The notes under the pieces: generated by a model
Told to the model about the DNA's origin: nothing
The model's database searches: none
The model's input: only the letters and a program-made list of their open reading frames with translations
Translations under genes and position numbers: made by a program
DNA from: Piromyces finnis finn
Lineage: Eukaryota; Fungi; Neocallimastigomycota
Length of the DNA stretch: 64,000 bases
Direction: 5' to 3'
Assembly: GCA_002104945.1 (NCBI GenBank)
Contig: MCFH01000001.1
Location: 1,984,001-2,048,000, forward strand
Shown here: piece by piece, positions 4,861 to 59,940 of the stretch
Position numbering within the stretch: the first letter of the stretch is position 1
Layout of the letters: each line of letters starts with the position of its first letter

Positions 4861-5951
4861 TTAAATTTTTATTTTTTTTTCTATTATTTTTACTTTCATC
4901 ATCTTCATTAGAAGTATTATAGGAAAGTTTAAAGGAATCACAAATTTTATAAATATACTTGGCATCAATATTTAATTTTTCGGCTAAATCTGTAGTATTA
5001 CGTTCAGATTTCTTTAAAAATTCATCAATAATTTTTATTTCATTTTCTGGAAGTTCAGATAATGTTTTAATAAAAGATAAATCTAATTTTGAATGGAAAA
5101 ATTTAAATGTAGTTTTAATTTGACTTTTTTCTTATTCCATTCCTTTCTCCAATTTCTTTTCTTTTTTTTTAAACTTTTTTTTTTTAACTACCGAGTGCAT
5201 TTCAATGGTGGTTCTTAGAGAAACGTTGGCTCATTCCTATTGCTAGGTGGTTGTGACCCCCTCCTGATCTGTCATACTGTATCTTCGGCTTCGACGCTCT
5301 CTTAATCCATATACATTAGATGCATGCCGTTGTACGATATTTCCCATTTTTTGTATACATCTTCTGTATCTTCATATCTAAACATTGAATCATTTGGATT
5401 ATTTAAAAATTTGACATCATTTATATCATCTTTGTCATCATTTTTTTTATTATTATATAATAATTTATCTAAATTATCATTGTAAACATTATCGTCATTA
5501 TTGTTTTTATTCTTAATTTTAAATTTAGGTAATTCAATAAAGTGAATTGTTGATAATTTACAATTACAACTATCATTATCCATTATTATTTCATTACCCT
5601 TTTTGTCAATGAGAATATTCATTTTTTCGTCGATTAACTTTCCATTGACATTTTGATAAAACTTTCCTTTATAAAAAGCTACACCATTTCTAGGAAAGTA
5701 TCTATAGCCGATTCTATCGTCAAACATTTTATAATTTAATATATTAATCATAATGATTTCTGGAATAACTTCATATGCCCGTCCTTTTGATACAGTATTG
5801 GACATTAATCTTGAAGCATAAAATTCAGATCGATAAAACATACTACCTACATTTGAAACATGAATTTCAATGTTTATGAGTTCTTCGTCATTCTCTTCTG
5901 AACCATCACCTGATAATAATTTTCTTTTTTTTAATCTTTTAAATTTACTTA
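4861..5951 (-). pseudogene. Truncated, interrupted copy of the Rpn/PD-(D/E)XK_2 nuclease gene
   Basis: Near-identical by eye to 24500..25927 from SKFKRLKKRK onward. The 5' part is missing and about 166 bp (relative to the 24.5 kb copy) is replaced by a foreign insert. An extra A at ATAAGAAAAAAGTCA shifts the frame. The C-terminal part is still alignable to the stop at 4861-4863. Confidence 0.9.
5160..5346 (-). mobile_element. About 185 bp GC-richer insert with A-rich tail; probable 5'-truncated retroposon 3' end
   Basis: Absent from both intact Rpn paralogues. On the minus strand it ends ...GCACTCGGTAGTT followed by A11-GTTT-A9. One frame reads ...RERRSRRYSMTDQEGVTTT*. No target-site duplication seen. 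Confidence 0.6.
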
Positions 5952-7284
5952 TAAAATATAAAAAAGAAATTTATTAATTTAAAATAAATAAATAAATATA
6001 TATATATATAAATATATAAATAAATAAATAAATAAATAAATATATAAATATTTACTATTGCTGTGTAAATATAGTATCTTTTTTTTTATATGTTTAAATT
6101 AAATATATAAATAAATAAAACATTATATTATTAATATATATTTACACATTACACATATTATTCTTAATTAATATTATGGTTGAACATTTAGAATATTTGT
6201 GTGAGTTTGAATAATTAAGTAAAATATAAATATATATAATGTAAGAGGAATCTATTAAAATTTGAATAAAATTGATATATATAGCATTGATAAATATAAT
6301 GATAAATATTTCAAATTAATAAAGGTATCACACTTGATGAAGAGAGTCTTTGGTCATTATATGAAAGAAATAAAGAATATTTTGGCGAGGATATCATTAA
6401 AAACTCATATTTCAGTATGGCTCTTTTATACCGACAAATAAATGTTAATAAATTATTGACCGACCGTGGAAAATTATACAGATATTTTTTATGAAAATGG
6501 TATTACCATTATATATAAATGGATTTATTTACTAAATTGTTAAGTATTATTCTAGAAAGTATGGGAATTAATTTAGAACCAGACTATGTAATGAATCTAT
6601 TTACTGTCTGGAATTTAACTTTTATTAAATTCCAGACAGTAACAAAGCTATTGCTTCATTTTAATCAAGTATAAAATGTTACATAAATAATAATGATAAG
6701 GATAAGGATGTGAATTTATACATTGTTTCCAACGTCATTAATAGCTATATTTATTATAATTATAATGAATAATCAAAAAAATACAAAATGAATGAAAATT
6801 ACGCAGTAAAGGTATATGAATATTTGATGAAAATAAAAAACAATAATTCAAAATTCGGTGGTTTAAATAGTATTAAGTAGATTGGATTATATTATAAAAA
6901 AAAATATTATAAAAATTTAAAATGTCATTACAAATGATTATGATTAATATTATTCCTAATACTAATTGTTATTAATACAAGATTTGTTTTATTTTTTTTT
7001 AAATAAAATTATAATGGATACCTAATTTAAACTAAAAATATTCAATAAATTAATATAACAACTATACAAGTTAGAAAATCAGTAATTTTATAATAGAAAC
7101 CAATTAAAAAAAAAATAACAAATATAGTCTATCTAACATATATTATATTTCATGCATTCAAAAAAAAATATAGTAGAAAACACAATACATATTCAATATT
7201 TATGATATCATTTAAGATAATCCTTAAAAATAGAAAAAAACTTTTTATATATCATCTTTTAGATTTTACAAATGATTTTTGTAC

Positions 7285-8086: not shown

Positions 8087-10133
8087 TTATTCAGCTTTGA
8101 TTTTATGTTGTTCTTCTTTTGGTAAACTATAATATTTTAATACTTCTTCTCTCATTTCTTCATTACTTTTTGAATACCATTTTTTATTTGAACAAATATG
8201 ATCACGGAATGTTTTTGCTTCTGTATCTTTATTAACATGGCCTGCAAGATGTAATAGGAAATCACCATCTTTATTTAATCCAATATAACTATTAAACCAG
8301 TTTTGTGGTACCACAATATAATGATCATCTTCTTTTGATTCAACCAAAACATTATTCATAGAGGATTGATCTGCATATTTCAAACCTTTTTCAGAATGAT
8401 AATAGGAATAAGACATAGCTCTCATTAAAAAATTGAGTGACCATGGATGAACTCTAATGAGGAATGTACCTGCATTAAGTCCATTAAGATCATCTGCTGC
8501 AATAAGATGAATTTTATTCATTCCTTCACCTGGTAAAAATGCTTCTAATCTAATATTTGGATTTGCAAGAATAACATCACTGTCAACCCAACTATTTTTT
8601 TAATAATACCCAATTATAGGAAAAATAAAAGTATTAAATGATAAAGAATTAGTCATTAAAATAGGTATATGTAAGTGTATAATTACATATTTAATTTAGA
8701 GGATATATAATTTATATTTTTTATATTCTATAATTAAAAGATATTGAAGAGAGTTTAAAAAAAGTTTAAATATTTTTTTTTTTTTAATTTTTATACATAC
8801 AAAATCCAATCAATATTCTTTTCTTTTAATCCAGTGATCATTTTTTCTAGAATGGAATTGAGTTTCATGAAAAATACTTGTCTCTCAGTATCATATTTAA
8901 ACGAATTAAATTGGAAAACATATCCATGAATGGATGCATATTGATAAAATTCACTAATGGCATTTTCATAGATAGAATTAACTTTAATAATATTACTAAA
9001 CATGACAATTGAAATTTTTTCTTTTTTTATTTCCTAATATTCAAAATTATATAAAAATATACATATATATATTATATATATTATCAATTAATAAATGTTA
9101 ATATTTTATATATTTTTTTATTTATAAAAATATATTGAAATATATTGTCATATAGAAGTATTTTATAGAAATATTTTATAGAAATATTAATGAAAATATT
9201 ATGAAAATATTATGAAAATAATAGAAATATTATTAAATTTAAAAAAAAAAAAAAATAAAATAAAAAACTTACTTGTTTCTTAACACATTCATATTTAACT
9301 TGAAGATATTTATGTTTGGATGGACAACTATCTGTAAAGTGTGAACCTCCTGGTCTTAAAGTACAGTAATCTTTTCCTTCACAAATTCCTTTAACATATT
9401 CAATAGGTTCACTAACACATTCTTCATTTACAAGAAGATCTTCTAATTTTGCTTGTTCTCCACCATATCGGATATTACAATGTTTTGTATCGTTTGCATG
9501 TCGACCATAGAATACTTTATTTACTTTTATACTATAGTAAGTAGGACATACAATATCATATCCTTTGTAACCTTCTGGAGGTCTATTAGTTGGTAATTCA
9601 CAAAAGTAAACATCTTTTTCTTTTTTAACATCTTCGAGGGTTTCAAATTTTTTATTATCATAATAGAAAGAGTCATCACTTTTCTTTGTATATGAATAAA
9701 TATTTAATTTTGTTTTATCATCTTTTTCTCTATCAACAGTAATTGGACCTTTTTCTTCCTTTTGGTCTACAAACACAAATCCTTCAGGTAACGGTATTTT
9801 TAAAGTAGTATTCTTTTCATTTTTATCAATATCAATACTGATATCATAAATATCATTATTAATATCATTAATATTGATGGATTTCATATTTTTAGGTTGT
9901 TCTGTCTTTACCGTTTTATTTATGGATTCATCTAATATATCATTTAATAGTGTATTGTTTATTTCAGCGTCATTGGATATATTTATATGAACTATTAATA
10001 AGATAACTATGGTCGATAAAATGATAATAATAATACTTTTAAATCTTTCTACATTTGAATTTTTATATTTAACTCTATTATTCTCTAAAAGAACGTATTC
10101 TTCTTCTTCTTCGGCAAAATTTACCACCGTCAT
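8087..10133 (-). CDS. Type II membrane protein: TM + stem + SUEL/Gal_lectin + GT34 (GMA12/MNN10-type) glycosyltransferase, copy A; exons 10133-9273, 9033-8801, 8591-8087; 532 aa
   Basis: Splicing at GT-AG sites joins three track ORFs in frame and rebuilds the GT34 motif DWIFWVDSDVILANP. LNAGTFLIR and DQSSMN follow. The lectin shows YGRH and DSCPSKHKYLQVKYEC. Confidence 0.9.
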
Positions 10134-12017: not shown

Positions 12018-14068
12018 TTATTCAGCTTTGATTTTATGTTGTTCTTCTTTTGGTAAACTATAATATTTTAATACTTCTTCTCTCATTTCTTCATTACTTT
12101 TTGAATACCATTTTTTATTTGAACGAATATGATCACGATATATCTCTGCTTCCTTATCTTTTTTAACATGGCCTGCAAGATGTAATAGGAAATCACCATC
12201 TTTATTTAATCCAATATAACTATTAAACCAGTTTTGTGGTACCACAATATAATGATCATCTTCTTTTGATTCAACTAAAACATTATTCATAGAGGATTGA
12301 TCTGCATATTTCAAACCTTTTTCAGGATAATAATAGGAATAAGACATAGCTCTCATTAAAAAATTGAGTGACCATGGATGAACTCTAATAAGGAATGTAC
12401 CTGCATTAAATCCATTAAGATCATCTGCTGCAATAAGATGGATTTTATTCATTCCTTCACCTGGTAAAAATGCTTCTAATCTAATATTTGGATTTGCAAG
12501 AATAACATCACTGTCAACCCAACTATTTTTTTAATAATACCCAATTATAGGAAAAATAAAAGTATTAAATGATAAAGAATTAGTCATTAAAGTAGGTATA
12601 TGTAAGTATATAATTACATATTTAATTTAAAGGATATATAATTTATATTTTTTATATTCTATAATTAAAAGATATTGAAGAGAGTTTAAAAAAAGTTTAA
12701 ATATTTTTTTTTTTTTTAATTTTTATACATACAAAATCCAATCAATATTCTTTTCTTTTAATCCAGTGATCATTTTTTCTAGAATGGAATTGAGTTTCAT
12801 GAAAAATACTTGTCTCTCAGTATCATATTTAAACGAATTAAATTGGAAAACATATCCATGAATGGATGCATATTGATAAAATTCACTAATGGCATTTTCA
12901 TAGATAGAATTAACTTTAATAATATTACTAAACATGACAATTGAAATTTTTTCTTTTTTTATTTCCTAATATTCAAAATTATATAAAAATATACATATAT
13001 ATATTATATATATTATCAATTAATAAATGTTAATATTTTATATATTTTTTTATTTATAAAAATATATTGAAATATATTGTCATATAGAAGTATTTTATAG
13101 AAATATTTTATAGAAATATTAATGAAAATATTATGAAAATATTATGAAAATATTATGAAAATATTATGAAAATATTATGAAAATAATAGAAATATTATTA
13201 AATTTAAAAAAAAAAAAAAATAAAATAAAAAACTTACTTGTTTCTTAACACATTCATATTTAACTTGAAGATATTTATGTTTGGATGGACAACTATCTGT
13301 AAAGTGTGAACCTCCTGGTCTTAAAGTACAGTAATCTTTTCCTTCACAAATTCCTTTAACATATTCAATAGGTTCACTAACACATTCTTCATTTACAAGA
13401 AGATCTTCTAATTTTGCTTGTTCTCCACCATATCGGATATTACAATGTTTTGTATCGTTTGCATGTCGACCATAGAATACTTTATTTACTTTTATACTAT
13501 AGTAAGTAGGACATACAATATCATATCCTTTGTAACCTTCTGGAGGTCTATTAGTTGGTAATTCACAAAAGTAAACATCTTTTTCTTTTTTAACATCTTC
13601 GAGGGTTTCAAATTTTTTATTATCATAATAGAAAGAGTCATCACTTTTCTTTGTATATGAATAAATATTTAATTTTGTTTTATCATCTTTTTCTCTATCA
13701 ACAGTAATTGGACCTTTTTCTTCCTTTTGGTCTACAAACACAAATCCTTCAGGTAACGGTATTTTTAAAGTAGTATTCTTTTCATTTTTATAAATATTAA
13801 TACTGATATCATTAATATCAATGTTTTTACTTTGTTCCGTTGTTTCTGTAAAATTTAATGTTTTATTCAATGCATCATTTAATAGAGTATCATCTGCTCC
13901 AGTTTCATTGAATGTACCAATATAAATTACTAATATAATAACTATAGTCGATAAAATGGCAATAATAATGTTTTTAATTTTTTCCACATTCGAATTTTTA
14001 TAATTAACTTTATCATTCTCTAATAATGTGTATCCTTCTTCTTTTTTGATAAGGTTTTCAACACCCAT
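12018..14068 (-). CDS. SUEL/Gal_lectin-GT34 glycosyltransferase, copy B; exons 14068-13238, 12965-12733, 12522-12018; 522 aa
   Basis: Same exon structure and motifs as copy A, about 3.9 kb away. The N-terminal TM/stem region is diverged. Confidence 0.9.
13122..13185. repeat. 11-bp intronic minisatellite (ATGAAAATATT), 6 units; 3 units in copy A at 9190-9220
   Basis: Units counted directly. The intron 1 lengths (272 vs 239 nt) differ by exactly 33 nt. Confidence 0.85.
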
Positions 14069-24200: not shown

Positions 24201-24499
24201 TCCCTTATTACTATCTCTGTGTGCAAAAATTATTATCAAAATATTCAACGTTGTTTAACCATATATCCAAAATTTTAAAAATACGAAAAATATGTATATA
24301 AAAAAGTAATGATTTATATATTTTCATATATAGTTTTTATAAATTATTAAATTGTTTTTAAAATTTTTTCTTTTTATTTATTTATTTGTTTATTTTTATG
24401 AACATATAAAAAAAAGTAAAATACATATTTGTGGTAAAAATATATAATTAACTCTATATAAAATATAATAAGCTATTAAAAAATTAACAATTTTTTTGA

Positions 24500-25927
24500 T
24501 TAAATTTTTATTTTTTTACTGCTTTTACTTTCATTATCTTCAATAGATGTATAATAGGAAATTTTAAAAGAATCACAAGTTTCATAAATAAAATTGGCAT
24601 CAATATTTAATTTTTCGGCTAAATCCGTAGCATTACGTTCAGATTCCTTTAAGAATTCATCAATAATGTTTATTTCATTTTCTGGAAGTTCAGATAATGT
24701 TTTAATAAAAGATGAATCGAAATTTGAATGGAAAAATTTAAATGTAGTTTTAATTTGACTTTTTCTTATTCCTTTCTTTTCTCCAATTTCTTCTCCTTCT
24801 TTTCTTCCTTCTTTTCTTCCTTCTTCTCTTCCTTCTTCTTTTCCTTTTTTCCAATAATGCTGTTTAGATGATTTTTCTGTTATTATTGAATCTATTCTAC
24901 TATTATATTCTTTTTTAAATTTTTCATCATCTTGTAAAAGTAATAATTCAGATCTTGCTTTTTTGTATACATCTTCTGTATCTTCATTTCTAAATATTGG
25001 ATCATTTGGATTATTTAAAAATTTGATCCATAGATTTTCCTCTTCATCGCTAATATCATCATCTTCGATATCATCTTTGTCATCATTTTCGATATCATCT
25101 TTGTCATCATCTTTGTCATCATCTTTGTCATCAACTTCGATATCATCTTTGTCATCATCTTTGCCATCATCTTTGCCATCATTTTTTTTATTATTATATA
25201 ATAATTTATCTAAATTATCATTGTAAACATTATCGTCATTATTGTTTTTATTCTTAATTTTAAATTTAGGTAATTCAATAAAGTGAATTGTTGATAATTT
25301 ACAATTACAACTATCATTATCCATTATTATTTCATTACCCTTTTTGTCAATGAGAATATTCATTTTTTCGTCGATTAACTTTCCATTGACATTTTGATAA
25401 AACTTTCCTTTATAAAAAGCTACACCATTTCTAGGAAAGTATCTATAGCCGATTCTATCGTCAAACATTTTATAATTTAATATATTAATCATAATGATTT
25501 CTGGAATAACTTCATATACCCGTCCTTTTGATACAGTATTGGACATTAATCTTGAAGCATAAAATTCAGATTGATTTAACATACTACCTACATTTGAAAC
25601 ATGAATTTCAATGTTTATGAGTTCTTCGTCTTTCTCTTCTGAAACATCACCTGATAATAATTTTCTTTTTTTTAGTCTTTTAAATTTACTTACTAATATA
25701 TCAGCATTAGGAAATTCCTCTTTTAAACTCTCTGCCCTCAATTCCTTATCAATAAATTTAATATTGTTAATATTAAAATCAAAATGACCATAATATTTTA
25801 ATATACTATTTAAGAAATGAACCAAAATTTCTTTATTCTTTTCATTACCAAATAATCTTTTAAAAACAATATCAACAGTTGGTTTTATAGTAATGACTCT
25901 TCTATTATTATAATTTAGATAGTCCAT
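24500..25927 (-). CDS. Rpn family / PD-(D/E)XK nuclease family transposase (PDDEXK_2-like), copy 1, intronless
   Basis: IKPTVDIVFKRLFG, LVHFLNSIL, ADILV...INIEIH, IIMINILNY, IHFIELPKF, LWIKFL and EGREEGRKEG repeats are the hallmark blocks of bacterial Rpn/PDDEXK_2 proteins. Confidence 0.88.
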   Translation of the reverse strand: MDYLNYNNRRVITIKPTVDIVFKRLFGNEKNKEILVHFLNSILKYYGHFDFNINNIKFIDKELRAESLKEEFPNADILVSKFKRLKKRKLLSGDVSEEKDEELINIEIHVSNVGSMLNQSEFYASRLMSNTVSKGRVYEVIPEIIMINILNYKMFDDRIGYRYFPRNGVAFYKGKFYQNVNGKLIDEKMNILIDKKGNEIIMDNDSCNCKLSTIHFIELPKFKIKNKNNNDDNVYNDNLDKLLYNNKKNDGKDDGKDDDKDDIEVDDKDDDKDDDKDDIENDDKDDIEDDDISDEEENLWIKFLNNPNDPIFRNEDTEDVYKKARSELLLLQDDEKFKKEYNSRIDSIITEKSSKQHYWKKGKEEGREEGRKEGRKEGEEIGEKKGIRKSQIKTTFKFFHSNFDSSFIKTLSELPENEINIIDEFLKESERNATDLAEKLNIDANFIYETCDSFKISYYTSIEDNESKSSKKIKI

Positions 25928-26481
25928 TTCTTTTTTTCTTTTCTTTCTTAGTATTTTAAATAAATAATCCTAAGAAATAATTAAAATAATATAAAAAAAA
26001 ATTTTTTAACAGAAAATCCAGCTACTTTTTTATTTCTAAAAACTTTAATTTATATTATTTTATTTATTAATTTGTTAATATTATTTATTTGTTAATGTTA
26101 CAAAATAAATAATATTTAAAATTAAGCTAGACTTCTTATTGTCTTTGAATAGAATCAATGTAAATGGTGGCTAAGTTTTATTCCTTAAATTATTATTAAT
26201 TATATTAATAATTATTAATTAATAAATATTAAATATTATATACTAAAAGAAAAAGTAATTTGAGTGATAAATAATTTCATTAAATATATTTAACAAAAAT
26301 CAATCAATAAATAAATAATTGAATAAATGGATAAATAAATTAAATAATAAATATTAAAGTTTCTGGACATACTAGAATCTATTTTATTATATAAAGTCTT
26401 TTTTTTTTTTTTTTAATTTTAATAAAATATTTATTCCGTGGGATTATTAATAAAAAAAAAAAGAAAGAAAGAAAATAAGAA

Positions 26482-28041
26482 ATGGACTATCTAAATTATA
26501 ATAATAGAAGAGTCATTACTATAAAACCAACTGTTGATATTGTTTTTAAAAGATTATTTGGTAATGAAAAGAATAAAGAAATTTTGGTTCATTTCTTAAA
26601 TAGTATATTAAAATATTATGGTCATTTTGATTTTAATATTAACAATATTAAATTTATTGATAAGGAATTGAGAGAAGAGAGTTTAAAAGAGAAATTTCCT
26701 AATGCTGATATATTAGTAAGTAAATTTAAAAGACTAAAAAAAAGAAAATTATTATCAGGTGATAGTTCAGAAGAGAATGACGAAGAACTCATAAACATTG
26801 AAATTCATGTTTCAAATGTAGGTAGTATGTTAAATCAATCTGAATTTTATGCTTCAAGATTAATGTCCAATACTGTATCAAAAGGACGGGCATATGAAGT
26901 TATTCCAGAAATCATTATGATTAATATATTAAATTATAAAATGTTTGACGATAGAATCGGCTATAGATACTTTCCTAGAAATGGTGTAGCTTTTTATAAA
27001 GGAAAGTTTTATCAAAATGTCAATGGAAAGTTAATCGACGAAAAAATGAATATTCTCATTGACAAAAAGGGTAATGAAATAATAATGGATAATGATAGTT
27101 GTAATTGTAAATTATCAACAATTCACTTTATTGAATTACCTAAATTTAAAATTAAGAATAAAAACAATAATGACGATAATGTTTACAATAATAATTTAGA
27201 TAAATTATTATATAATAATAAAAAAAATGATGGCAAAGATGATGGCAAAGATGATGACAAAGATGATATCGAAAATGATGACAAAGATGATATCGAAAAT
27301 GATGACAAAGATGATATCGAAAATGATGACAAAGATGATATCGAAAATGATGACAAAGATGATATCGAAGATGATGATATTAGCGATGAAGAGGAAAATC
27401 TATGGATCAAATTTTTAAATAATCCAAATGATCCAATATTTAGAAATGAAGATACAGAAGATGTATACAAAAAAGCAAGATCTGAATTATTACTTTTACA
27501 AGATGATGAAAAATTTAAAAAAGAATATAATAGTAGAATAGATTCAATAATAACAGAAAAATCAATTCGAGAGTATGATAAAAGAAAATATTTAAAAGAA
27601 GGCGAAGAAATTGGAGAAAAGAAAGGAATAATAAAAGGAAGAAAAGAAGGAGAAGAAATTGGAGAAAAGAAAGGAATAATAAAAGGAAGAGAAGAAGGAA
27701 GAAAAGAAGGAAGAGAAGAAGGAAGAAAAGAAGGAAGAAAAGAAGGAAGAAAAGAAGGAGAAGAAATTGGAATAAGAAAAAGTCAAATTAAAACTACATT
27801 TAAATTTTTCCATTCAAATTTCGATTCATCTTTTATTAAAACATTATCTGAACTTCCAGAAAATGAAATAAACATTATTGATGAATTCTTAAAGGAATCT
27901 GAACGTAATGCTACGGATTTAGCCGAAAAATTAAATATTGATGCCAATTTTATTTATGAAACTTGTGATTCTTTTAAAATTTCCTATTATACTTCTATTG
28001 AAGATGATGAAAATAAAAGTAGTAAAAAAATAAAAATTTAA
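26482..28041 (+). CDS. Rpn family / PD-(D/E)XK nuclease, copy 2, divergent from copy 1
   Basis: Near-identical to copy 1 apart from repeat-number differences; start codons are 554 bp apart. Confidence 0.88.
   Translation: MDYLNYNNRRVITIKPTVDIVFKRLFGNEKNKEILVHFLNSILKYYGHFDFNINNIKFIDKELREESLKEKFPNADILVSKFKRLKKRKLLSGDSSEENDEELINIEIHVSNVGSMLNQSEFYASRLMSNTVSKGRAYEVIPEIIMINILNYKMFDDRIGYRYFPRNGVAFYKGKFYQNVNGKLIDEKMNILIDKKGNEIIMDNDSCNCKLSTIHFIELPKFKIKNKNNNDDNVYNNNLDKLLYNNKKNDGKDDGKDDDKDDIENDDKDDIENDDKDDIENDDKDDIENDDKDDIEDDDISDEEENLWIKFLNNPNDPIFRNEDTEDVYKKARSELLLLQDDEKFKKEYNSRIDSIITEKSIREYDKRKYLKEGEEIGEKKGIIKGRKEGEEIGEKKGIIKGREEGRKEGREEGRKEGRKEGRKEGEEIGIRKSQIKTTFKFFHSNFDSSFIKTLSELPENEINIIDEFLKESERNATDLAEKLNIDANFIYETCDSFKISYYTSIEDDENKSSKKIKI
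27229..27372 (+). repeat. Coding minisatellite: five 24-bp units (DDKDDIEN) preceded by two 12-bp units
   Basis: GATGACAAAGATGATATCGAAAAT at 27253, 27277, 27301, 27325 and 27349. The unit order differs in copy 1, and the array is almost absent in the pseudogene. Confidence 0.9.
27598..27775 (+). repeat. Coding EGRK/EEIG repeat array
   Basis: 12-bp GAAGGAAGAAAA-type units plus a duplicated EGEEIGEKKGIIKGR block; the array is shorter in copy 1. Confidence 0.85.
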
Positions 28042-30518
28042 TCAAAAAAATAAATGAAACAAAATTCAATGAATATATGTAGTTAATTTTATAATTAATT
28101 TTATAATGGTTAACTTTTATTTTAATATATTTTATTTATATAGTTCATTATATTTTTATACTTTGAATATGTATTTTATTTTTCTTATCATTCACAAAAA
28201 AATAAACAAATAAATAAAATGTAATATTTTAAATGTAAATAATAAAATTATAAAAACTCTATATATGTATATATAAACTATTATTCATTTTTTTATTTAC
28301 AAATATATATTCATATTTTTATAGTTTTTAATTTTAATAATGATATCAAACTCAAGGAACTCTCGTAAGTTCTTTATGAAATGTTTTTTAAATGGAAATA
28401 ATAATTTTGTTTTAATTTTAATTATAAAAGAAACAAATTTCGATATCAACTTTTAAAATTCTAATCAACAAGTAGTATTAAAAAACATCAAATTAAAATT
28501 AACAATGTAATGTAATAATAATTTATTCAAATAAACTAAATTAAAAAAAAAAAAATACTATACAAAAAAATAAATGGAAAAAAATATTTTTTTTGAATTA
28601 ACAAAAATCAAATTCTTACTTAAATTTTTTTTTTTGATAATTATTATAGAAAAATAGATTACGACAAGTCTTAATATATCACTATAATTATTAACTTTTA
28701 TTTGGTTAATAGTAGCTATGATAGATCCTAAAATTCATAGAATAAACAAGAAATATCAAAATATATATTAGTAAAAAAAAAATATATTTCTACTGATATG
28801 AAAAGTATATTATCTTTATTAATATGTAATCTTTTAATGAAATTTTAAAAGTATAAAGTTTTTCATTAAATACAGATAAACCTTTTAATTCAATAAAAAT
28901 ATGAGTTCATTTAGTTTTCCTACTTTATCATAAACAAAAAAAGAAAAACTCTACATCATTTAATGAAAATTAATAAATAATTTGATTTTCTAATAATCTA
29001 TCTATTAATCAAATAAATTTATAGTATTTTTAGTAATGCTATATCGAATTGAAATTCCGTGTCATTTACTTGACATCTAAAAAAAATAAAGTTTTAATCT
29101 CTAATTTCATTTATATAACATTTCAAAAAAAAAAAAAAATTGATATGGTAAATTGATTAATCATTTTTTGTGTGTATGGGTATTGTTCTCCAGATTCATA
29201 TATTAATGAATAAATTTTTCAATCTGATATTTCTCTTTCTCTATCAAAATAAAAATAATAAAAAAGAAAAGATCCTCTAAAATAAATTTACTCATGATAA
29301 AATAAATATATGCATGTATACAAAAAGAAAAGGAAGATTCAATCAATTTTTTTTTTCAAAGCGTTATAAAAATAAATAAATAAAAATTGTTTATTTTTAA
29401 AACCAGAATTTCATTTATTTAATTAAAAAATTAATGTTACACAAAAATTTAAAAACAAAAATGAAATTTAGAAAAGTTAAACTTTTTATTGATTGCACTT
29501 AAACAAAAAGGTAGTTCAAAATTCATCTGGAATTCTTATTACTCTTTCAACATGGAATTAACAAAAACAAAACCTTACCTAATAATTAACCAAACATTTT
29601 AAAAATAAAACTTCTAAATTTCTTAAAATAATTTATATTTTTTTTTTCTTTTAGTTGCTACTACCTAGTTCATTCTTTTTCTCCAACAATTTTATACACA
29701 TACACCCATTTTTTTTTTTTTTTAATTTTTTTATTTTGTGAGAAATTTTATCGTTTTTTTTTAAATATAATTATAATTTTTCTATATTTCCTATTTTATG
29801 TAATTTATATATAAAATGGTGGTGATGATGACCTATTCGAAAACATTTTTCTTTATAGATTCAGAAAAATTATAAAATATTTTAATTATCAAATTTTTTT
29901 TAAAATTTTGAATAAAAAAGTTTTTAAGTTTTATTTGTAAAAGTTAATTGTAAATCGAATAATAACGAAAAAAAAATGTAAACAGTTTAAAAAATAAAGG
30001 TTTGACTACTTCAAATATTTTATATAGCTTACATATAAAATAGTAATTATTACTACTATTTTTCAAAAAATAGATATAGTATTTTTATACTAAATTTCTA
30101 AGTTATTTAGACGATAACTATTTTCCCCTTTATAATCTTATTTGTTTCATAAAATATCAAAGGTTTCAATGGTTTAATTTTATAAATATGTTTAAATTTT
30201 TTCTTTTTAATGAGGCCTCTTTTTTTTTTTTTTCTTAATTTTTTTCAAACAAAATTTTTGAAGAAATATTAATAATTTCTTGAATTATAGGTATGATAAA
30301 CGCTTTTTGTTGTTAAAAAATAAGTTGTCAATATAAATATTTTATAATTTTCAAAAAAAAAAAAGATAAATTTTTTTTGAAAAGTCTTCCAAAACTAATA
30401 AAAATTATTATTTTAAATAATAATAGTCTTTATTGTTTTATAAAACTTTTTTTATCTTTTATTTTCACAATAATAGATATATTGTATTTTAGCATAATTT
30501 TTTCTTTTTTCATCTCCT

Positions 30519-55259: not shown

Positions 55260-58200
55260 AGAGACAGATTTTTTCCATATACGTTATAATTATAATTTTT
55301 ATTAGTATTTATTTTATATTCAATATTTTTTTAATTAGAATTTATTATCATGTCAGTCCTTTATATTAAAGATAAGAATTATATCAGACGTGGTACCCGG
55401 TCTTATGGTATCCCCTTAGATGATATTCGCTCCTTCTTTATCCGTGGTATTCGATCATGGTCAGTAAATATGCTATGGGAAAAACTCGAGGTTATTCTAG
55501 AAGATAAATTTAATTCAGTTATTAGTGTTAAATATTTTCAAACTTTCAATGATCACTTTTTCTTAGTCAAGGTTCATGGTTCATCAAAAGATTGTATTAA
55601 AATCTTACACATGTTAAAGAAGAAACTTTCAGTTACCTCAATTTCCTTTTCAGCTCGTAGTAGAAGGAATCACAAATACACTTTTTCCACTCTCAAACGT
55701 AAAATTTTAGTTTCTAATAAACATCAACATTCTATTCAACAATCATTTCAACAATCAGTTCAACAATCTCATCAACAATCCGATCTTCAACAAGATCTTC
55801 AACAAGATCTTCAACAAGTTTCCCATCATGAAAATATTCCAGATCTACAGCAAACACAATTTCAATCTCAACATTCAACAATTAATTCTAATAGTTCTAT
55901 CAACTCTGATAACAGTTCAATAGTTGATAGTTCTTCAGTTTCACAGCCATCTAGTAATAGTTCAACTTATTCCTCTGATGCATCATCCATTAATAACGAT
56001 GACTTTAATAATAATAATAATAATAGCAACGATTCTTCCTCATCCAACAAGCCTGATAACTTTTCTTTTTGTCTTAGTTGGAACACCAATGGGTGGAATC
56101 ACGAAAAGAGAGATAGTATTAGCTATTTCACAGCTATTTTCAAACCATTATTTTTATGTTTCCAAGAAACTGGTAATGGTTCTGGATCGAATACAGATTA
56201 TCCTTGTCGTGTTACTTTGCGAAACTATAGACACTTTTTCAAGAAAGCTGACGAATCAGTTCCGGGAATGAGAGGTTTATATTTAGGTTTTCACAATTCG
56301 TGTCAAGCCTCACTTGAAAACTTCTCTGGAAAGTATATTATTTCTATTTATACTTTTAGTCTTTGGAATAGATTCAAATGCTCGATTGGAAATGTTTATA
56401 TGCCTCATAGTCATCACAACATCTATGTTGATCATGCAAAGTTAGAAGTTCGCTTGTGGTTACAAACTCATTCATCCCATCCATCGATTCTTGTTGGTGA
56501 TTTTAATATGTCTAAAGTAAAATTATCCAACTGGTTATCAACTAATGGATTAGGAGATTGGGAAATTCTTCCGCTTAGAGGGTCTACTATCTCTTGGACT
56601 CGAGGTGATCAATCTTCCGACATTGACCATGCTCTTATCAATTCGAAGATGAAAGATCTTATTCACTCAGGATCATTTATAAATAATTTTTATCCTGTAT
56701 CAGACCATAAGCCACTTCTTATTAATGGTAAAATTATTCCTATGGAAGATTTTTCTAATGACTTTAATGTTCCTAAGAAAATTCTGAAATGGAATAGATT
56801 AAAATATATTGAGGAAAAGGAATCTATTCTCAGTCATAATAAATTCAAAATACTTTCAGCAAAACTCAACGATCCTAATGTTTCTACAGATGAACTTTCC
56901 AAAGAGTTTACTTCAACTGCTTTTTAAATTGCAGACGAGCTCAGTATTACCTCAGCAAATAATGTTATAAAGTCTTCATTTCATATTTCACAACAAATTT
57001 TTAATCTTCAAAAAATCAAAATGAAGTTGTATAAGAGATTTAAAAAAGAAAGAATTTATGATATAGATGAATTTATTAAAAGAATTAAAATCTACCGTAA
57101 GCTCATTGATTACATCCACAAAAGATGTAATGAATTTAGGAAACAAGAATATCTTCATTGGATTAAAACAGGATGTGAGTATATGAAGAGTCATAATCCT
57201 AAGAAGGCCTGGAAATGTATCAAGAAAACTGCAAAAATTGGAAAAGATTCTTTCTTTATTGCTCAACCAATTAAAAATAAAAATGGAGAATTAGTTGTTG
57301 CTACAGAAGAACAACTAGAAGTGTGGCATGATCATTTCGAAAACCTTGCATCAGATCCAAGTGGTGTAAGTCTTGATTTGGAGCATTGGTATGAAGAACC
57401 AATGAATAAACGTTTTTCACTTCCTATGCTTGATGAGTGGGATATCAACCAAGATATTAGTATTGATGAAGTCAAGTCAGCTATCCTCTCTACTCCAAAT
57501 TATAAAGCATCAGGTCCGGATGGTATTCCAATTGAATTTTACAAAGCATTAATTCCATCAAGTAATGATTCTAATAATGCTACAGATAATAATTCTTCCG
57601 GTAATACCACTTCAGATAATGATGCTCATGGTTTAAATTTTATTCTTAAATTATTCAATCGTATTTGGGATGGAGACTTCCCCAACTCATGGAATGAATC
57701 CAGTATTGTTTCTATTCCTAAGAAGGGAGATTTGACAGATTGTGATAACTATCGAGGTATATCACTTATCAATAATGGTATTAAGTTGATTTCCAAAATT
57801 GTCACAACTAGAATCTCAGAATATGGTCTAAAGAATAATTTCATTAGACCTGAACAATTTGGTTTTCGAAAAAAGGAAGAAAGTATTAGTCTTTTCATTT
57901 CAATCCAAGAAATATGCCGTAGACGTCAATTAGATAATAAAGAGACATATTTGGCCTTTTTAGATCTCAGGAAAGCATACGATTCAGTCCCAATCGGTAA
58001 TATTCTCCATAAATTAGATTGTTTAGGAATCCGAGGTAAGAGTTTACAATTCATCAAAAATTTATATTTAACATCTAAGGCTAATGTCAAATTAGATGGA
58101 CAATTCTCGAAATCTTTTGATGTGAAGAAAGGAGTCCGTCAAGGATGCCCTCTTTCTCCTATTCTCTTTAATCTCTTTATTAATGATATATTTAAAGAGT

Positions 58201-59940
58201 GCGAAGATCTAGGAGTCAGTTTAGGTGACACTCGATGCTGTGGTGGACTTTTTGCAGATGATATAGTTATTTATGCTCCAACAAGAGGATGCTTAAAAAA
58301 GATGCTAAGAAGAGTTAATGAATGGGCCTTGTATAATGAAATGGAATTTGGTATCCAGAAATGTTCAACGATGGTGATTCGTCCTGAATCAATAGAAAAT
58401 CAGAACAAGAGAGATCCAACATTTTACTTAGCAGGACAACCCATTCCAACTACTGATTGTTATACTTATCTTGGTGTTCCGTTTGATAAGAATCTGTCCC
58501 TTAAACCAATTATTAAAACTCTTAATAACAAAGTTTTGAAAGGACTCTTTTCAGTCAGTAAATTCTTAATAAATCCTAATATTCCTATTCCCTTCAAAAA
58601 GCTAGTACTTAACTCACAAGTGATTAGCAGAGTTTCATACTTTGCACCATTACTTGGATCCAACAAAGCCAGGTCTAGAATTGCTCAGAAGCATATTAAC
58701 AAAGGAATACGATGGATTGCCGGAGTTCATAAAGCTGTATCGTTTATATCTTTATACTCTATCTCAAAAGATTCGAATATTCCTCCATTGTCAGCCAAAT
58801 GTGCGTTAGCTCAGGTTAGATGTTTTAACAAATGGAAAAACTCGAATTGTATTATCTCACACCTTGTCAATTACATTCCTAAATTTAGAAAATACACATG
58901 GTGCAAATCAAGTAGGACACTTGATAAAAAACTAAAGAAGCATGGAGATATTAAAGCAGTTAAAAACTTTTATTGGAAAGATCTCAAAGGGAATTCAATC
59001 AAAGCGCAATATTATGATGATAATAAATTTATTGAAACTAAAGATTTTATTAAATTATGTTATGAGTACCCAGAGTTTGCCTATGGCTTCTACTGGCTAT
59101 TGAAAGCAAGAAGCGGATACAAGTTGGATGCTAGAGTTGCCAAAGCTGCTAAATTTGTTGATCCAGTTTGTCCTAACTACTGTCCATGTTGCAAGTGTGG
59201 AGATCAAAGTATTAAACATTGGTTATTAGATTGTCCAACATTTAGAGATATCCGTATTAAACATTATGATTCTATAGTCCATCTATTAAATTTTTTCAGT
59301 CAACGTAATTCCAATAGTCCTATCAATAATAATGAAAATGTTAATATCAGTAGAAATAGCAATAACAGTAATAGTAATAGTAATAATAGTAATAATAACA
59401 ATAGTAATAATAACAATAGTAGTAATAGTAATAATAACAATAGTAATAATAACAATAGTAGTAATAGAAATAATAATATTAGTAATGATAGCAATAGTGA
59501 TGATAATAATTCTAATTTAGATAGTAATTTAGTTGATGATAGTAATAGTTCTAATAATCCGGTGAATATTAATGTGTATGATTATTCTAGTGTGTGCAGT
59601 AAAATATTTAAATTCCTTCTTGGGGGAAGAAGTTTTAACAATATTAATTACAATTCAAGGGAATGGAAAGAACTTTGTAAGCGTCAGATTCAATCTGGTA
59701 CTAACGAAGGAACATCATTCTTGACGGTAACCGCGGAACTTCTAACCAAAATCATGCCTTTTGCTATTGGCCAGCAATGGTCAATGTTCAAAAGGTTTGA
59801 AGCAACATCCAAGAGCGTCAATGCTGAAGAAACAGTAAGACAGGCCAGGAGGGCCAGCGCAACCAATGGAGATCATAATTTTGTTCCATGACAAAATTTT
59901 GATCTTTGGCTCGGTGTCCCATTGGAAGTCAAATACAATT
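55260..59940 (+). mobile_element. Near full-length non-LTR retrotransposon (LINE): one frame 55350-59891 encoding N-terminal domain + APE endonuclease + RT + Cys/His knuckle, interrupted by one TAA (56925-56927)
   Basis: APE: SWNTNG, FQETG, VGDFN, IDH, SDHKP. RT: GPDGIP, NYRGISL, QFGFR, LDLRKAYDSV, GVRQGCPLSPILF, FADD, YLG. C-terminus CPCCKC...HWLLDC. Both track ORFs share a frame and the 93-nt gap has no stop. Element ends are approximate and the clade is unresolved. Confidence 0.95.
59330..59560 (+). repeat. Asn/Ser-coding AAT/AGT repeat inside the LINE ORF
   Basis: In-frame poly-N/S tract after the zinc knuckle. Confidence 0.9.

Follow-up and report, generated by a model that had tools for sequence, protein, structure and literature searches.

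A head-to-head pair of Rpn/PDDEXK_2 genes in the gut fungus Piromyces finnis is probably a local inverted duplicate within an old bacteria-derived family

Two genes that lie head to head in the genome of the anaerobic gut fungus Piromyces finnis encode full-length relatives of the bacterial Rpn proteins, and the explanation that we find best as a whole is that they are probably a local inverted duplicate within an old Rpn family derived from bacteria. To our knowledge, Rpn proteins have been known only from bacteria. There, recent work identified them as nuclease toxins that carry their own antidote and protect against phages. Here a whole eukaryotic lineage appears to have long retained full-length relatives with a variable repeat helix and with additions of a eukaryotic type. 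This offers a test case for how bacterial genes for defence or toxins are tamed once a eukaryote has acquired them, and the family lets one ask if a pairing code based on repeat number works outside bacteria.

The pair lies in a 64-kb stretch of P. finnis DNA, referred to here as the window. ORF A (24500-25927, minus strand, 475 aa) and ORF B (26482-28041, plus strand, 519 aa) are both uninterrupted frames, oriented divergently on either side of a 554-bp spacer (25928-26481). With stop codons expected at 9.7% of random codons in the window, chance would supply about 1e-16 open frames of this length per 64 kb. The two are 98.6% identical over aligned coding positions (20 mismatches), and their difference in length is due to in-frame changes in repeat number. 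These coordinates and this identity confirm the original prediction of two open, near-identical, divergent frames. The family assignment made in that prediction holds as well. Both proteins score above the curated cut-offs of PF12784 (ORF A, E 1.1e-20 and 74.8 bits; ORF B, E 2.4e-21 and 77 bits; cut-off 27.4) and TIGR01784 (72.9 and 67.3 bits, respectively; cut-off 52.1), and the fungal proteins are collinear with bacterial Rpn proteins over their full length.

The N-terminal part of each protein appears to be a PD-(D/E)XK nuclease core of bacterial design. Its motif, found at 26707-26808 (plus strand) in ORF B and in the same form at 25601-25702 (minus strand) in ORF A, consists of D76, a basic insert (residues 81-94) and E107-I-H109. 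An alignment of the Rpn family shows D76 to be invariant and E107 and Q109 each to be at least 90% conserved. All five intact P. finnis copies carry H at position 109 in place of the family Q; the residue is Q in Piromyces sp. E2 and Neocallimastix and K in a fungus from a rumen metagenome. Because the third motif residue is H and not Q, the nuclease activity of the P. finnis proteins is uncertain. Sequence and structure searches were run with the N-terminal parts, the part after the repeats and database paralogues as queries. The model of the N-domain is mediocre (pLDDT 68.7), and its top structural matches are nearly all PD-(D/E)XK nucleases, at levels below significance (Foldseek E of at least 0.16; VIA Z 6.0, rmsd 3.2-4.5 over 94-121 residues). 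Foldseek returned nothing at E ≤ 0.001 for either the N-domain or the C-terminal model, and a sequence search of the PDB gave no match. A PADLOC scan also gave no match, but this result says nothing, because its models do not cover even the bacterial Rpn relative, which likewise went unmatched.

Despite the collinearity with their bacterial relatives, the fungal frames are longer (400-519 aa, compared with ~280-330 aa for bacterial Rpn), and the fungal lineage seems to have gained several elements of its own. Specifically, the basic insert at residues 81-94 within the nuclease motif is found only in the fungi and resembles an NLS, and a 35-aa insert is likewise fungus-only. An acidic, D/K-rich linker of low complexity, missing from the bacterial homologues, spans 84 aa in ORF B (27145-27396, plus strand) and 76 aa in ORF A (25037-25264, minus strand). 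In addition, all fungal members share a C-terminal extension that is absent in bacteria; in ORF B it comprises 45 HTH-like residues with a basic end (27904-28038, plus strand), and its counterpart in ORF A lies at 24503-24637 (minus strand). The extension gave a TrmB profile match below the cut-off (E 0.024) and only weak matches to HTH-type folds.

Apart from the fungal homologues, which besides P. finnis are found in Piromyces sp. E2, Orpinomyces, Neocallimastix and rumen metagenomes, the family is bacterial. A bacterial origin had been claimed for the pair, and a phylogeny with gut-bacterial homologues is in line with this. The 13 fungal rows form a single group (UFBoot 97 / SH-aLRT 90), which adjoins a clade of gut and ruminant Clostridia that includes MAGs from roe deer, sheep and the human gut (96/90), in a tree where long branches are joined and where a low-GC amino-acid make-up may draw the fungal branch to low-GC bacteria. 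This placement fits one old transfer of the Rpn family from bacteria to fungi, in which the ancestor of the anaerobic gut fungi would have taken it up once, long ago, most likely from gut Clostridia. A tblastx synteny comparison of the window with the Piromyces sp. E2 and metagenome loci showed only low-complexity noise. Our literature searches did not find the Rpn family in anaerobic fungi, and it is not named in the text or the searched supplements of 10.1101/487215 (Murphy et al. 2019) and PMC11291939; in the latter, a survey of transfers into Neocallimastigomycota, a PDDEXK_3 + AAA_19 cluster is the only entry of this kind (Ciach et al. 2024, PMC11291939).

The two genes form the arms of a high-identity inverted repeat. 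The left arm (24490-25958) contains ORF A and the right arm (26451-28051) ORF B, each with 31 bp upstream and 10 bp downstream, and the arms align as two inverted-repeat pairs of 97% and 95% identity. Farther out, diverged homology continues in the 3′ flanks (24377-24467 paired with 28128-28218; 78% identity). On the inner side, identity drops to ~80% from 31 bp off the ATG, compared with a coding dS of 0.027. The AT-rich spacer itself is the upstream region of ORF A set directly against that of ORF B. Its part at 25928-26246 has a homologue upstream of a copy on contig C157 (L007), and its part at 26037-26481 has homologues upstream of the further copies L004/L005 and L009. The two halves match each other at ~80% of aligned positions, as against the 98.6% of the coding sequence, and an upstream region of this type is also present at other, unpaired members of the family. 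Gene conversion between the inverted arms probably keeps the coding parts almost identical while the flanks drift apart. Because the arms seem to be homogenised by conversion and the flanks have drifted, the head-to-head layout can be read as a by-product of duplication and not as an evolved regulatory unit; judged by its sequence, it resembles a local inverted duplication more than a designed unit.

The original prediction had suggested possible co-regulation of the pair from one bidirectional promoter, and for this we find no support. The layout is not conserved among paralogues or relatives: the remaining intact P. finnis copies are arranged as a direct pair, with 6.9 kb between its members, and a tail-to-tail pair, and Piromyces sp. 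E2 and a fungus represented by rumen-metagenome contigs have single genes. The spacer, as described above, is two copies of the family's upstream region. A co-regulated pair is thus unsupported, and in our view it is not the interesting part of this locus.

The amplification proposed for the family is real. The P. finnis genome holds five intact copies, and five or more others have decayed; copies or fragments are spread over six contigs, with intact and dead ones mixed, and all five intact copies lie within ~80 kb of one contig, which is what local segmental duplication predicts. The window contains one of the decayed copies, and the earlier description of a broken third copy at about 4.9-6.0 kb proved correct. 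It is a 5′-truncated pseudogene (4877-5955, minus strand) whose nuclease part is 94-97% identical to ORF A and ORF B. It covers residues about 78-257, 309-332 and 416-516; it has lost the first ~77 codons as well as the linker and repeats, and a stop codon interrupts the tail. Another copy, on contig C178, retains the C-terminal half alone in an open frame; we rejected it as a stand-alone C-terminal gene, since none of its ORFs that open with a start codon reaches 80 aa. These observations suggest that the family grew by ordinary DNA-level duplication of gene-sized units, each probably comprising the upstream region, the ORF and ~200 bp downstream, into a mixture of intact and dead copies.

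The genes might be functionless relics of an old transfer that are drifting to decay, with A and B open as young or converted copies. Several observations lean this way. Among the P. finnis paralogues dN/dS is about 0.65-0.9, not significantly below 1 (all Fisher p > 0.18); for ORF A versus ORF B alone, the probability of finding no stop under neutrality is 0.31; at least five copies have decayed; and Q109 has become H in all five intact ones. We nevertheless consider this explanation unlikely. Two independent P. finnis lineages have stayed open through 113-141 substitutions, where 6-7 stops are expected and 0 are seen (P 0.0003-0.002; the test is weakened because the intact copies were picked from about eleven, and correcting for that choice gives roughly 0.03), while the similarly diverged copy on contig C157 has 10 stops. 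Four genera carry intact orthologues, pN between species is far below pS (N-domain omega 0.37, Fisher p 2e-7), and the indels between intact copies are all in frame. A dN/dS near 1 had been named at the outset as evidence against a retained function; it is nearly reached among the paralogues (0.65-0.89) and is not seen between species. Judged from these substitution patterns, amino-acid constraint is weak among paralogues and clear between species. The C-terminal part of the paralogues gave an omega of 1.4-2.4 on only 2-5 synonymous changes (p 0.28), and we do not accept positive selection there. In sequencing runs from the same organism, which are RNA by guess only, 8-34% of words are present, suggestive at most of expression.

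The dispersal of intact and dead copies over six contigs, together with weak purifying selection, could also be the mark of a selfish nuclease, a gene that spreads through breaks or recombination promoted by its own product and passes through a cycle of birth and death. In bacteria, Rpn proteins stimulate RecA-independent recombination and have given rise to arrays through duplication, but an autonomous PD-(D/E)XK transposase is not known (PMC10400941). We regard such an element as improbable. The original prediction had noted that terminal inverted repeats and target-site duplications are absent, and this is upheld: apart from the gene arms as such, neither was detected, the copies lack defined ends and the limits of homology differ from copy to copy. 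In addition, relatives have single copies, and the close clustering of the five intact copies is as local segmental duplication predicts.

Variable numbers of four-residue repeats in the C-terminal domain are a hallmark of bacterial Rpn (PMC10400941), and the fungal proteins retain them. The long C-terminal helix of ORF B carries fifteen xGxx repeats (27598-27777, plus strand) and ORF A carries seven (24764-24847, minus strand); across five P. finnis paralogues the counts are 15, 7, 7, 7 and 3. The C-terminal model of a paralogue (pLDDT 89.1) contains a 50-residue helix. A homodimer model of paralogue P0003 (residues 270-385; pLDDT 86) scored 0.39 against 0.02 for the best control. The value is in silico and for a paralogue only, and could stem from the predictor's recall of the solved RpnA-S dimer. 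Of solved homodimers, 21 of 30 passed the mark applied to this score, and of monomers none of 23. Contacts agree between runs of the model to 97% or more, and the interface coincides with the repeat stretch (residues 292-333). The solved RpnA-S structure is absent from the top Foldseek matches of the C-terminal model. These models suggest that the repeat helix of the A/B-type proteins most likely forms a dimer interface, with a small helical bundle after it. We infer that the proteins may act as nuclear, dimeric, DNA-binding endonucleases in which repeat number sets the specificity of pairing; their cellular role might lie in defence, in recombination or in selfish persistence.

Whether gut fungi keep a working nuclear system of the Rpn type, with repeat number as its pairing code, is a bolder proposal to which we give little chance. 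If it were true, dimers would form separately among paralogues with 3, 7 or 15 repeats, or only matching partners would neutralise toxic full-length forms; the family would then be the eukaryotic counterpart of a toxin-antitoxin that bacteria use against phages, directed against mycoviruses or foreign DNA, or an addiction module. We hold it very improbable, in particular, that the family is a toxin-antidote or defence module in which the nuclease is checked by a C-terminal domain, a paralogue or a truncated copy, with repeats coding the fit. The repeat-bearing C-terminal domain has been kept, no two paralogue groups have the same repeat number and the dimer model puts the interface on the repeats, all of which would suit such a module; in E. 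coli, RpnL is blocked only by RpnS of the same repeat number (PMC10400941), and the C178 copy keeps only the C-terminal half in an open frame. E. coli RpnA-E are described as an RpnL toxin with an intragenic RpnS antitoxin (Zhong et al. 2023, PMC10400941), and an RpnS-type product would be a separate C-terminal protein made from an internal start and beginning 8-20 residues before the repeats. However, neither ORF A nor ORF B has an in-frame AUG after residue 202, that is, in the C-terminal 273 or 317 residues, which makes an AUG-initiated RpnS equivalent impossible for either. The toxin-antidote arrangement of enterobacteria, raised as a possibility in the original prediction, therefore lacks its sequence prerequisite here, and the C178 fragment offers no start codon for an ORF of at least 80 aa.

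That the locus belongs to a genuine fungal chromosome, as originally assumed, is well supported. GC is 12-33% throughout the window, the GC3 of ORF A and ORF B (0.14-0.15) matches that of the host, the neighbouring genes are eukaryotic (SUEL lectins, LCM, Ecl1 and a LINE) and the proteins are annotated in P. finnis. Bacterial contamination or an artefactual palindrome, which might be suspected since the family is otherwise bacterial and long-read chimeras can generate inverted duplicates, is already close to refuted: the pair sits between fungal genes well inside a 2.6-Mb contig and fits the host in composition and codon GC3, the closest bacterial proteins are merely 25-34% identical, the arms differ by 20 substitutions and several repeat-number changes around a spacer that is an imperfect palindrome, and paralogues and orthologues are present in other fungal assemblies.

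The pair resembles three known systems in different ways. Like divergent gene pairs with a shared promoter, it consists of two genes head to head, 554 bp apart; unlike them, its layout is not conserved and its spacer is made of two separate upstream regions of the family. The likeness to bacterial Rpn (RpnA-E, TIGR01784/PF12784) extends from the sequence family to the core with motif D + E and the IELPKF strand, the long C-terminal helix with a variable number of four-residue repeats and a predicted dimer through that helix, as well as the absence of TIRs and TSDs and the formation of arrays by duplication. In contrast to bacterial Rpn, the genes here are in a eukaryotic host, with frames of 400-519 aa, H for Q at position 109 and no in-frame AUG for an RpnS-like product, and they carry the additions described above (the basic insert within the motif, the 35-aa insert, the acidic linker and the 45-aa HTH-like tail). 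With the known transfers from bacteria to Neocallimastigomycota (10.1101/487215; PMC11291939), the family shares the recipient lineage, likely donors among gut Firmicutes, a fully ameliorated base composition and duplication after transfer; those transfers, in contrast, mostly brought metabolic and carbohydrate-active enzymes, not nuclease or defence-type genes.

The gene pair and its family are real, and two long, near-identical, divergent open frames and a third, decayed copy lie exactly at the positions of the original prediction. ORF A (24500..25927, minus strand, 475 aa) and ORF B (26482..28041, plus strand, 519 aa) are uninterrupted and divergently transcribed across a 554-bp spacer; the third copy (about 4877-5955, minus strand) is broken, being without its first ~77 codons, linker and repeat region and having a stop in the tail. 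With the window at 81% A+T, 9.7% of random codons would be stops, and chance would yield about 1e-16 open frames of A/B length in 64 kb. The coding sequences of A and B are 98.6% identical at aligned positions (20 mismatches) and differ mainly in repeat number, the 44-residue length gap being made up of in-frame changes in two internal repeats. A purine-rich repeat stretch (24786-24854) lies inside the four-residue repeat region of ORF A. The deposited P. finnis models of the family (P0002, P0003 and P0004) are 354-385 aa long, as against 400-519 aa for the uninterrupted ORFs; they seem to splice out pieces of continuous coding sequence, and the public proteins are probably mis-modelled.

Bacterial contamination is ruled out for practical purposes: the closest database proteins are annotated P. 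finnis hypothetical proteins from a contig of 2.6 Mb, the bacterial proteins that come nearest share only 25-34% identity, and the GC3 of the ORFs (0.14-0.15) is like that of host genes. The window (G000:C1:1984001-2048000, from an assembly of 56.5 Mb in 232 contigs) has a GC content of 12-33%, and nearby lie ORFs for two SUEL-lectin proteins, a leucine carboxyl methyltransferase and an Ecl1-family protein, as well as a LINE that has endonuclease and reverse transcriptase. The lectins, SUEL-type galactose/rhamnose-binding paralogues 3 kb apart in the same orientation (9210-10133, minus, 307 aa; 13175-14068, minus, 297 aa), both have the lectin domain at the C-terminus. At 55350-59891 (plus), the window's GC-richest stretch (28-34%), adjacent ORFs of 525 aa (endonuclease/exonuclease/phosphatase domain) and 956 aa (reverse transcriptase) look like an apparently intact LINE-type retroelement. 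A false palindrome is also unlikely, because substitutions and unequal repeat numbers separate the two arms and the spacer does not form a palindrome.

Both genes belong to the Rpn/PDDEXK_2 family, as had been proposed, with profile scores exceeding the curated cut-offs of PF12784 (PDDEXK_2, Pfam; A 74.8 bits, B 77 bits, cut-off 27.4) and of TIGR01784 (NCBIfam, Rpn family recombination-promoting nuclease/putative transposase; A 72.9 bits, B 67.3 bits, cut-off 52.1). In alignment, the fungal proteins are collinear with bacterial members over the entire bacterial protein: the DxxFKxxFG motif at the N-terminus is followed by the invariant D76, the NIEI(Q) strand and the invariant HFIELPKF strand, then by the W-x-x-F and KKA motifs, a charged repeat punctuated by glycines and a small helical unit at the end. 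Across 52 aligned N-domains D76 never varies, and conservation reaches at least 90% at both E107 and Q109; position 109 is H in all five P. finnis copies, Q in Piromyces sp. E2 and Neocallimastix, and K in a rumen-metagenome fungus. The AlphaFold model of the N-domain is mediocre (pLDDT 68.7), and its best structural matches, nearly all PD-(D/E)XK nucleases (McrC, NucS, Can2/Card1 and type II restriction enzymes), fall below significance (Foldseek E >= 0.16; VIA Z 6.0, rmsd 3.2-4.5 over 94-121 residues). The assignment therefore rests on the sequence profiles, from which the N-terminal part is predicted to adopt the PD-(D/E)XK nuclease fold.

The proposed horizontal acquisition holds up, with the identity of the donor only likely. 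The eukaryotic matches in the searches all come from anaerobic gut fungi (Piromyces finnis, Piromyces sp. E2, Orpinomyces, Neocallimastix 'constans', N. lanati and rumen-metagenome sequences), all non-fungal search matches are bacterial, and every one of the 40 ESM-Atlas neighbours is a PDDEXK_2 cluster, of bacterial origin in each case with a recorded taxon. A maximum-likelihood tree (LG+C20+F+G4) built from 73 proteins puts all 13 fungal rows together (UFBoot 97, SH-aLRT 90) and joins them to a ten-sequence clade whose named members are Clostridia (96/90), among them MAGs from the abomasum of roe deer, the duodenum of sheep and the human gut. Long branches meet in the tree, as the tool warns, and the low-GC amino-acid make-up that the fungi share with the bacteria of the clade could attract them to one another; a clostridial donor is thus likely rather than shown. 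The single origin receives independent support from a 45-residue C-terminal extension that is present in both fungal clades and in no aligned bacterial sequence, and the transfer is old, given an identity of only about 28% between the two fungal clades. The Rpn family goes unmentioned in the searched text and supplements of both main surveys of transfer into these fungi (10.1101/487215, PMC11291939), the latter listing a PDDEXK_3 + AAA_19 cluster only, and our literature search returned no paper linking PDDEXK with anaerobic fungi.

The family has also been amplified, as predicted. A six-frame search of the P. finnis genome found five intact copies, all on the contig that carries the window. 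The three outside the window (loci L003-L005, G000:C1:2078078-2087991) are a direct pair of near-identical 432-aa copies 6.9 kb apart (C1:2078078 and 2084968) and a 400-aa copy (C1:2086789-2087991, minus) that lies tail to tail with the second of the pair, with 522 bp between stops. Decayed copies or fragments, some with up to 18 stops, occur at 4.9-6.0 kb of the window and on contigs C157, C174, C2, C24 and C178; the last of these (L008, G000:C178:967843-968529) is the C-terminal half only (residues ~276-519), an open 237-codon frame with no usable start codon. Just upstream of it lies an ORF of 372 aa with much N/S low-complexity sequence. The sequence shared between copies comprises the ORF, up to about 300-450 bp of its upstream flank and about 150-250 bp on the downstream side, with limits that vary from copy to copy, and the comparison confirmed that no terminal inverted repeats or target-site duplications are present among the copies compared. 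In this the fungal copies resemble bacterial rpn arrays, which arise via duplication, not transposition (Zhong et al., PMC10400941).

The head-to-head layout had been taken to suggest co-regulation from one bidirectional promoter, a reading that the evidence does not support. Spacer positions 25928-26246 are homologous, in A's orientation, to the region upstream of the C157 copy, and positions 26037-26481, in B's orientation, to what lies upstream of the C1 and C174 copies. The spacer is thus no unique sequence: each gene has a family upstream region to itself, and the two abut. Nor is the layout conserved: the other intact P. finnis copies are direct or tail to tail, and a single intact gene, with no partner within the flanks read, is found at the Piromyces sp. 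E2 locus and on six rumen-metagenome contigs of another fungus. On one JGI metagenome contig (Ga0216348_1001230; L032 1072-1390) a short dead fragment lies 1.7 kb upstream of the intact gene in the same orientation, which indicates local duplication and decay in another species as well. A plain recent duplication would leave flanks as similar as coding sequence; however, the 98.6% coding identity of A and B (dS = 0.027) ends 31 bp from the ATG, beyond which about 80% of the aligned 5′-flank positions match, and the 3′ flank falls off less abruptly, being 89-93% identical at aligned positions over its first 200 nt, with many gaps, and lower farther out. Gene conversion between the inverted coding arms would be the simplest explanation of this contrast, and the most plausible reading of the pair is an inverted duplicate whose arms have been kept alike in this way, rather than a co-regulated unit or an established toxin-antidote system.

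The family is under selection to stay open, or recently was. When the 113-141 substitutions observed between the two P. finnis clades were scattered at random with their spectrum kept, 5.8-7.2 stops were expected on average and the frame stayed open in 0.03-0.2% of trials; as the intact copies are chosen out of about eleven, a fair probability is nearer 0.03. The C157 copy, at comparable divergence, has 10 stops, and the same test has no power for A against B alone (P 0.31). A dN/dS near 1 had been named as evidence against the original prediction. Among the five intact paralogues, NG86 ratios are 0.65 (A-B) and 0.78-0.89 (A/B against the other three); the nuclease part by itself gives 0.61-0.67, and the C-terminal part values above 1. 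No ratio differs significantly from 1, and these ratios are upper bounds, since GC3 near 0.14 probably leads synonymous change to be underestimated. Between species the ratio is clearly below 1, with pN far below pS: omega is 0.46 overall and 0.37 in the N-domain against the rumen-metagenome fungus (Fisher p 1e-7 and 2e-7), and 0.67 against Piromyces sp. E2 (p 0.014). Amino-acid constraint is weak, as is common among defence, selfish and recently redundant genes. Sequencing runs of the same organism hold 8-34% of sampled words, their status as RNA being a guess.

By sequence, the fungal genes are a eukaryotic offshoot of the bacterial Rpn family that has gained parts of its own. Alignment with bacterial members reveals four fungus-only additions: a basic insert between D76 and E107 (residues 81-94 in A/B), a ~35-residue insert after the NILNY strand, 76-84 residues of acidic D/K low-complexity linker after IELPKF, and the 45-residue C-terminal tail, at whose end basic residues cluster. 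Both this cluster and the basic insert resemble nuclear import signals and may act as such. A confident model (pLDDT 89.1) of the C-terminal 151 residues of the 400-aa paralogue comprises a 50-residue helix, two short helices and two further helices in the tail; its structural matches are weak (E > 1) and nearly all helix-turn-helix DNA-binding domains, and the tail has a sub-threshold TrmB match (E 0.02-0.03).

The suggested toxin-antidote role invites comparison with bacterial RpnL, a toxic endonuclease blocked by its own C-terminal domain, RpnS, which is made from an internal start located, in the enterobacterial design, 8-20 residues ahead of the repeats (PMC10400941). That design does not carry over to A and B: their last in-frame Met is residue 202, with none in the C-terminal 273 (A) or 317 (B) residues, making an AUG-initiated equivalent of RpnS impossible. 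A short C-terminal product could still come from initiation at a non-AUG codon, from an internal transcript or from proteolysis. In the RpnA-S dimer each subunit is a three-helix bundle, the first helix containing four-residue repeats of widely variable number, and only an RpnS of equal repeat number blocks its RpnL (PMC10400941). A homodimer model of residues 270-385 of the 400-aa paralogue scored 0.39 (best control 0.02), passing a mark that 21 of the 30 proteins with a solved homodimer structure attain but none of the 23 with a solved single-chain structure; contacts agreed by at least 97% between runs (pLDDT 86), and the interface (residues 292-333) is the repeat stretch. The modelled dimer supports the likeness to RpnA-S, and its pass may reflect memory of that structure. 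Phasing on glycine gives 15 xGxx units for B, 7 for A, likewise 7 for each 432-aa copy (one unit without glycine) and 3 for the 400-aa copy, and other fungal members likewise differ by whole units. Expression, nuclease activity and repeat-coded pairing, if true, would sharply raise the interest of the family. The fungal proteins, like bacterial Rpn, keep the repeat helix.
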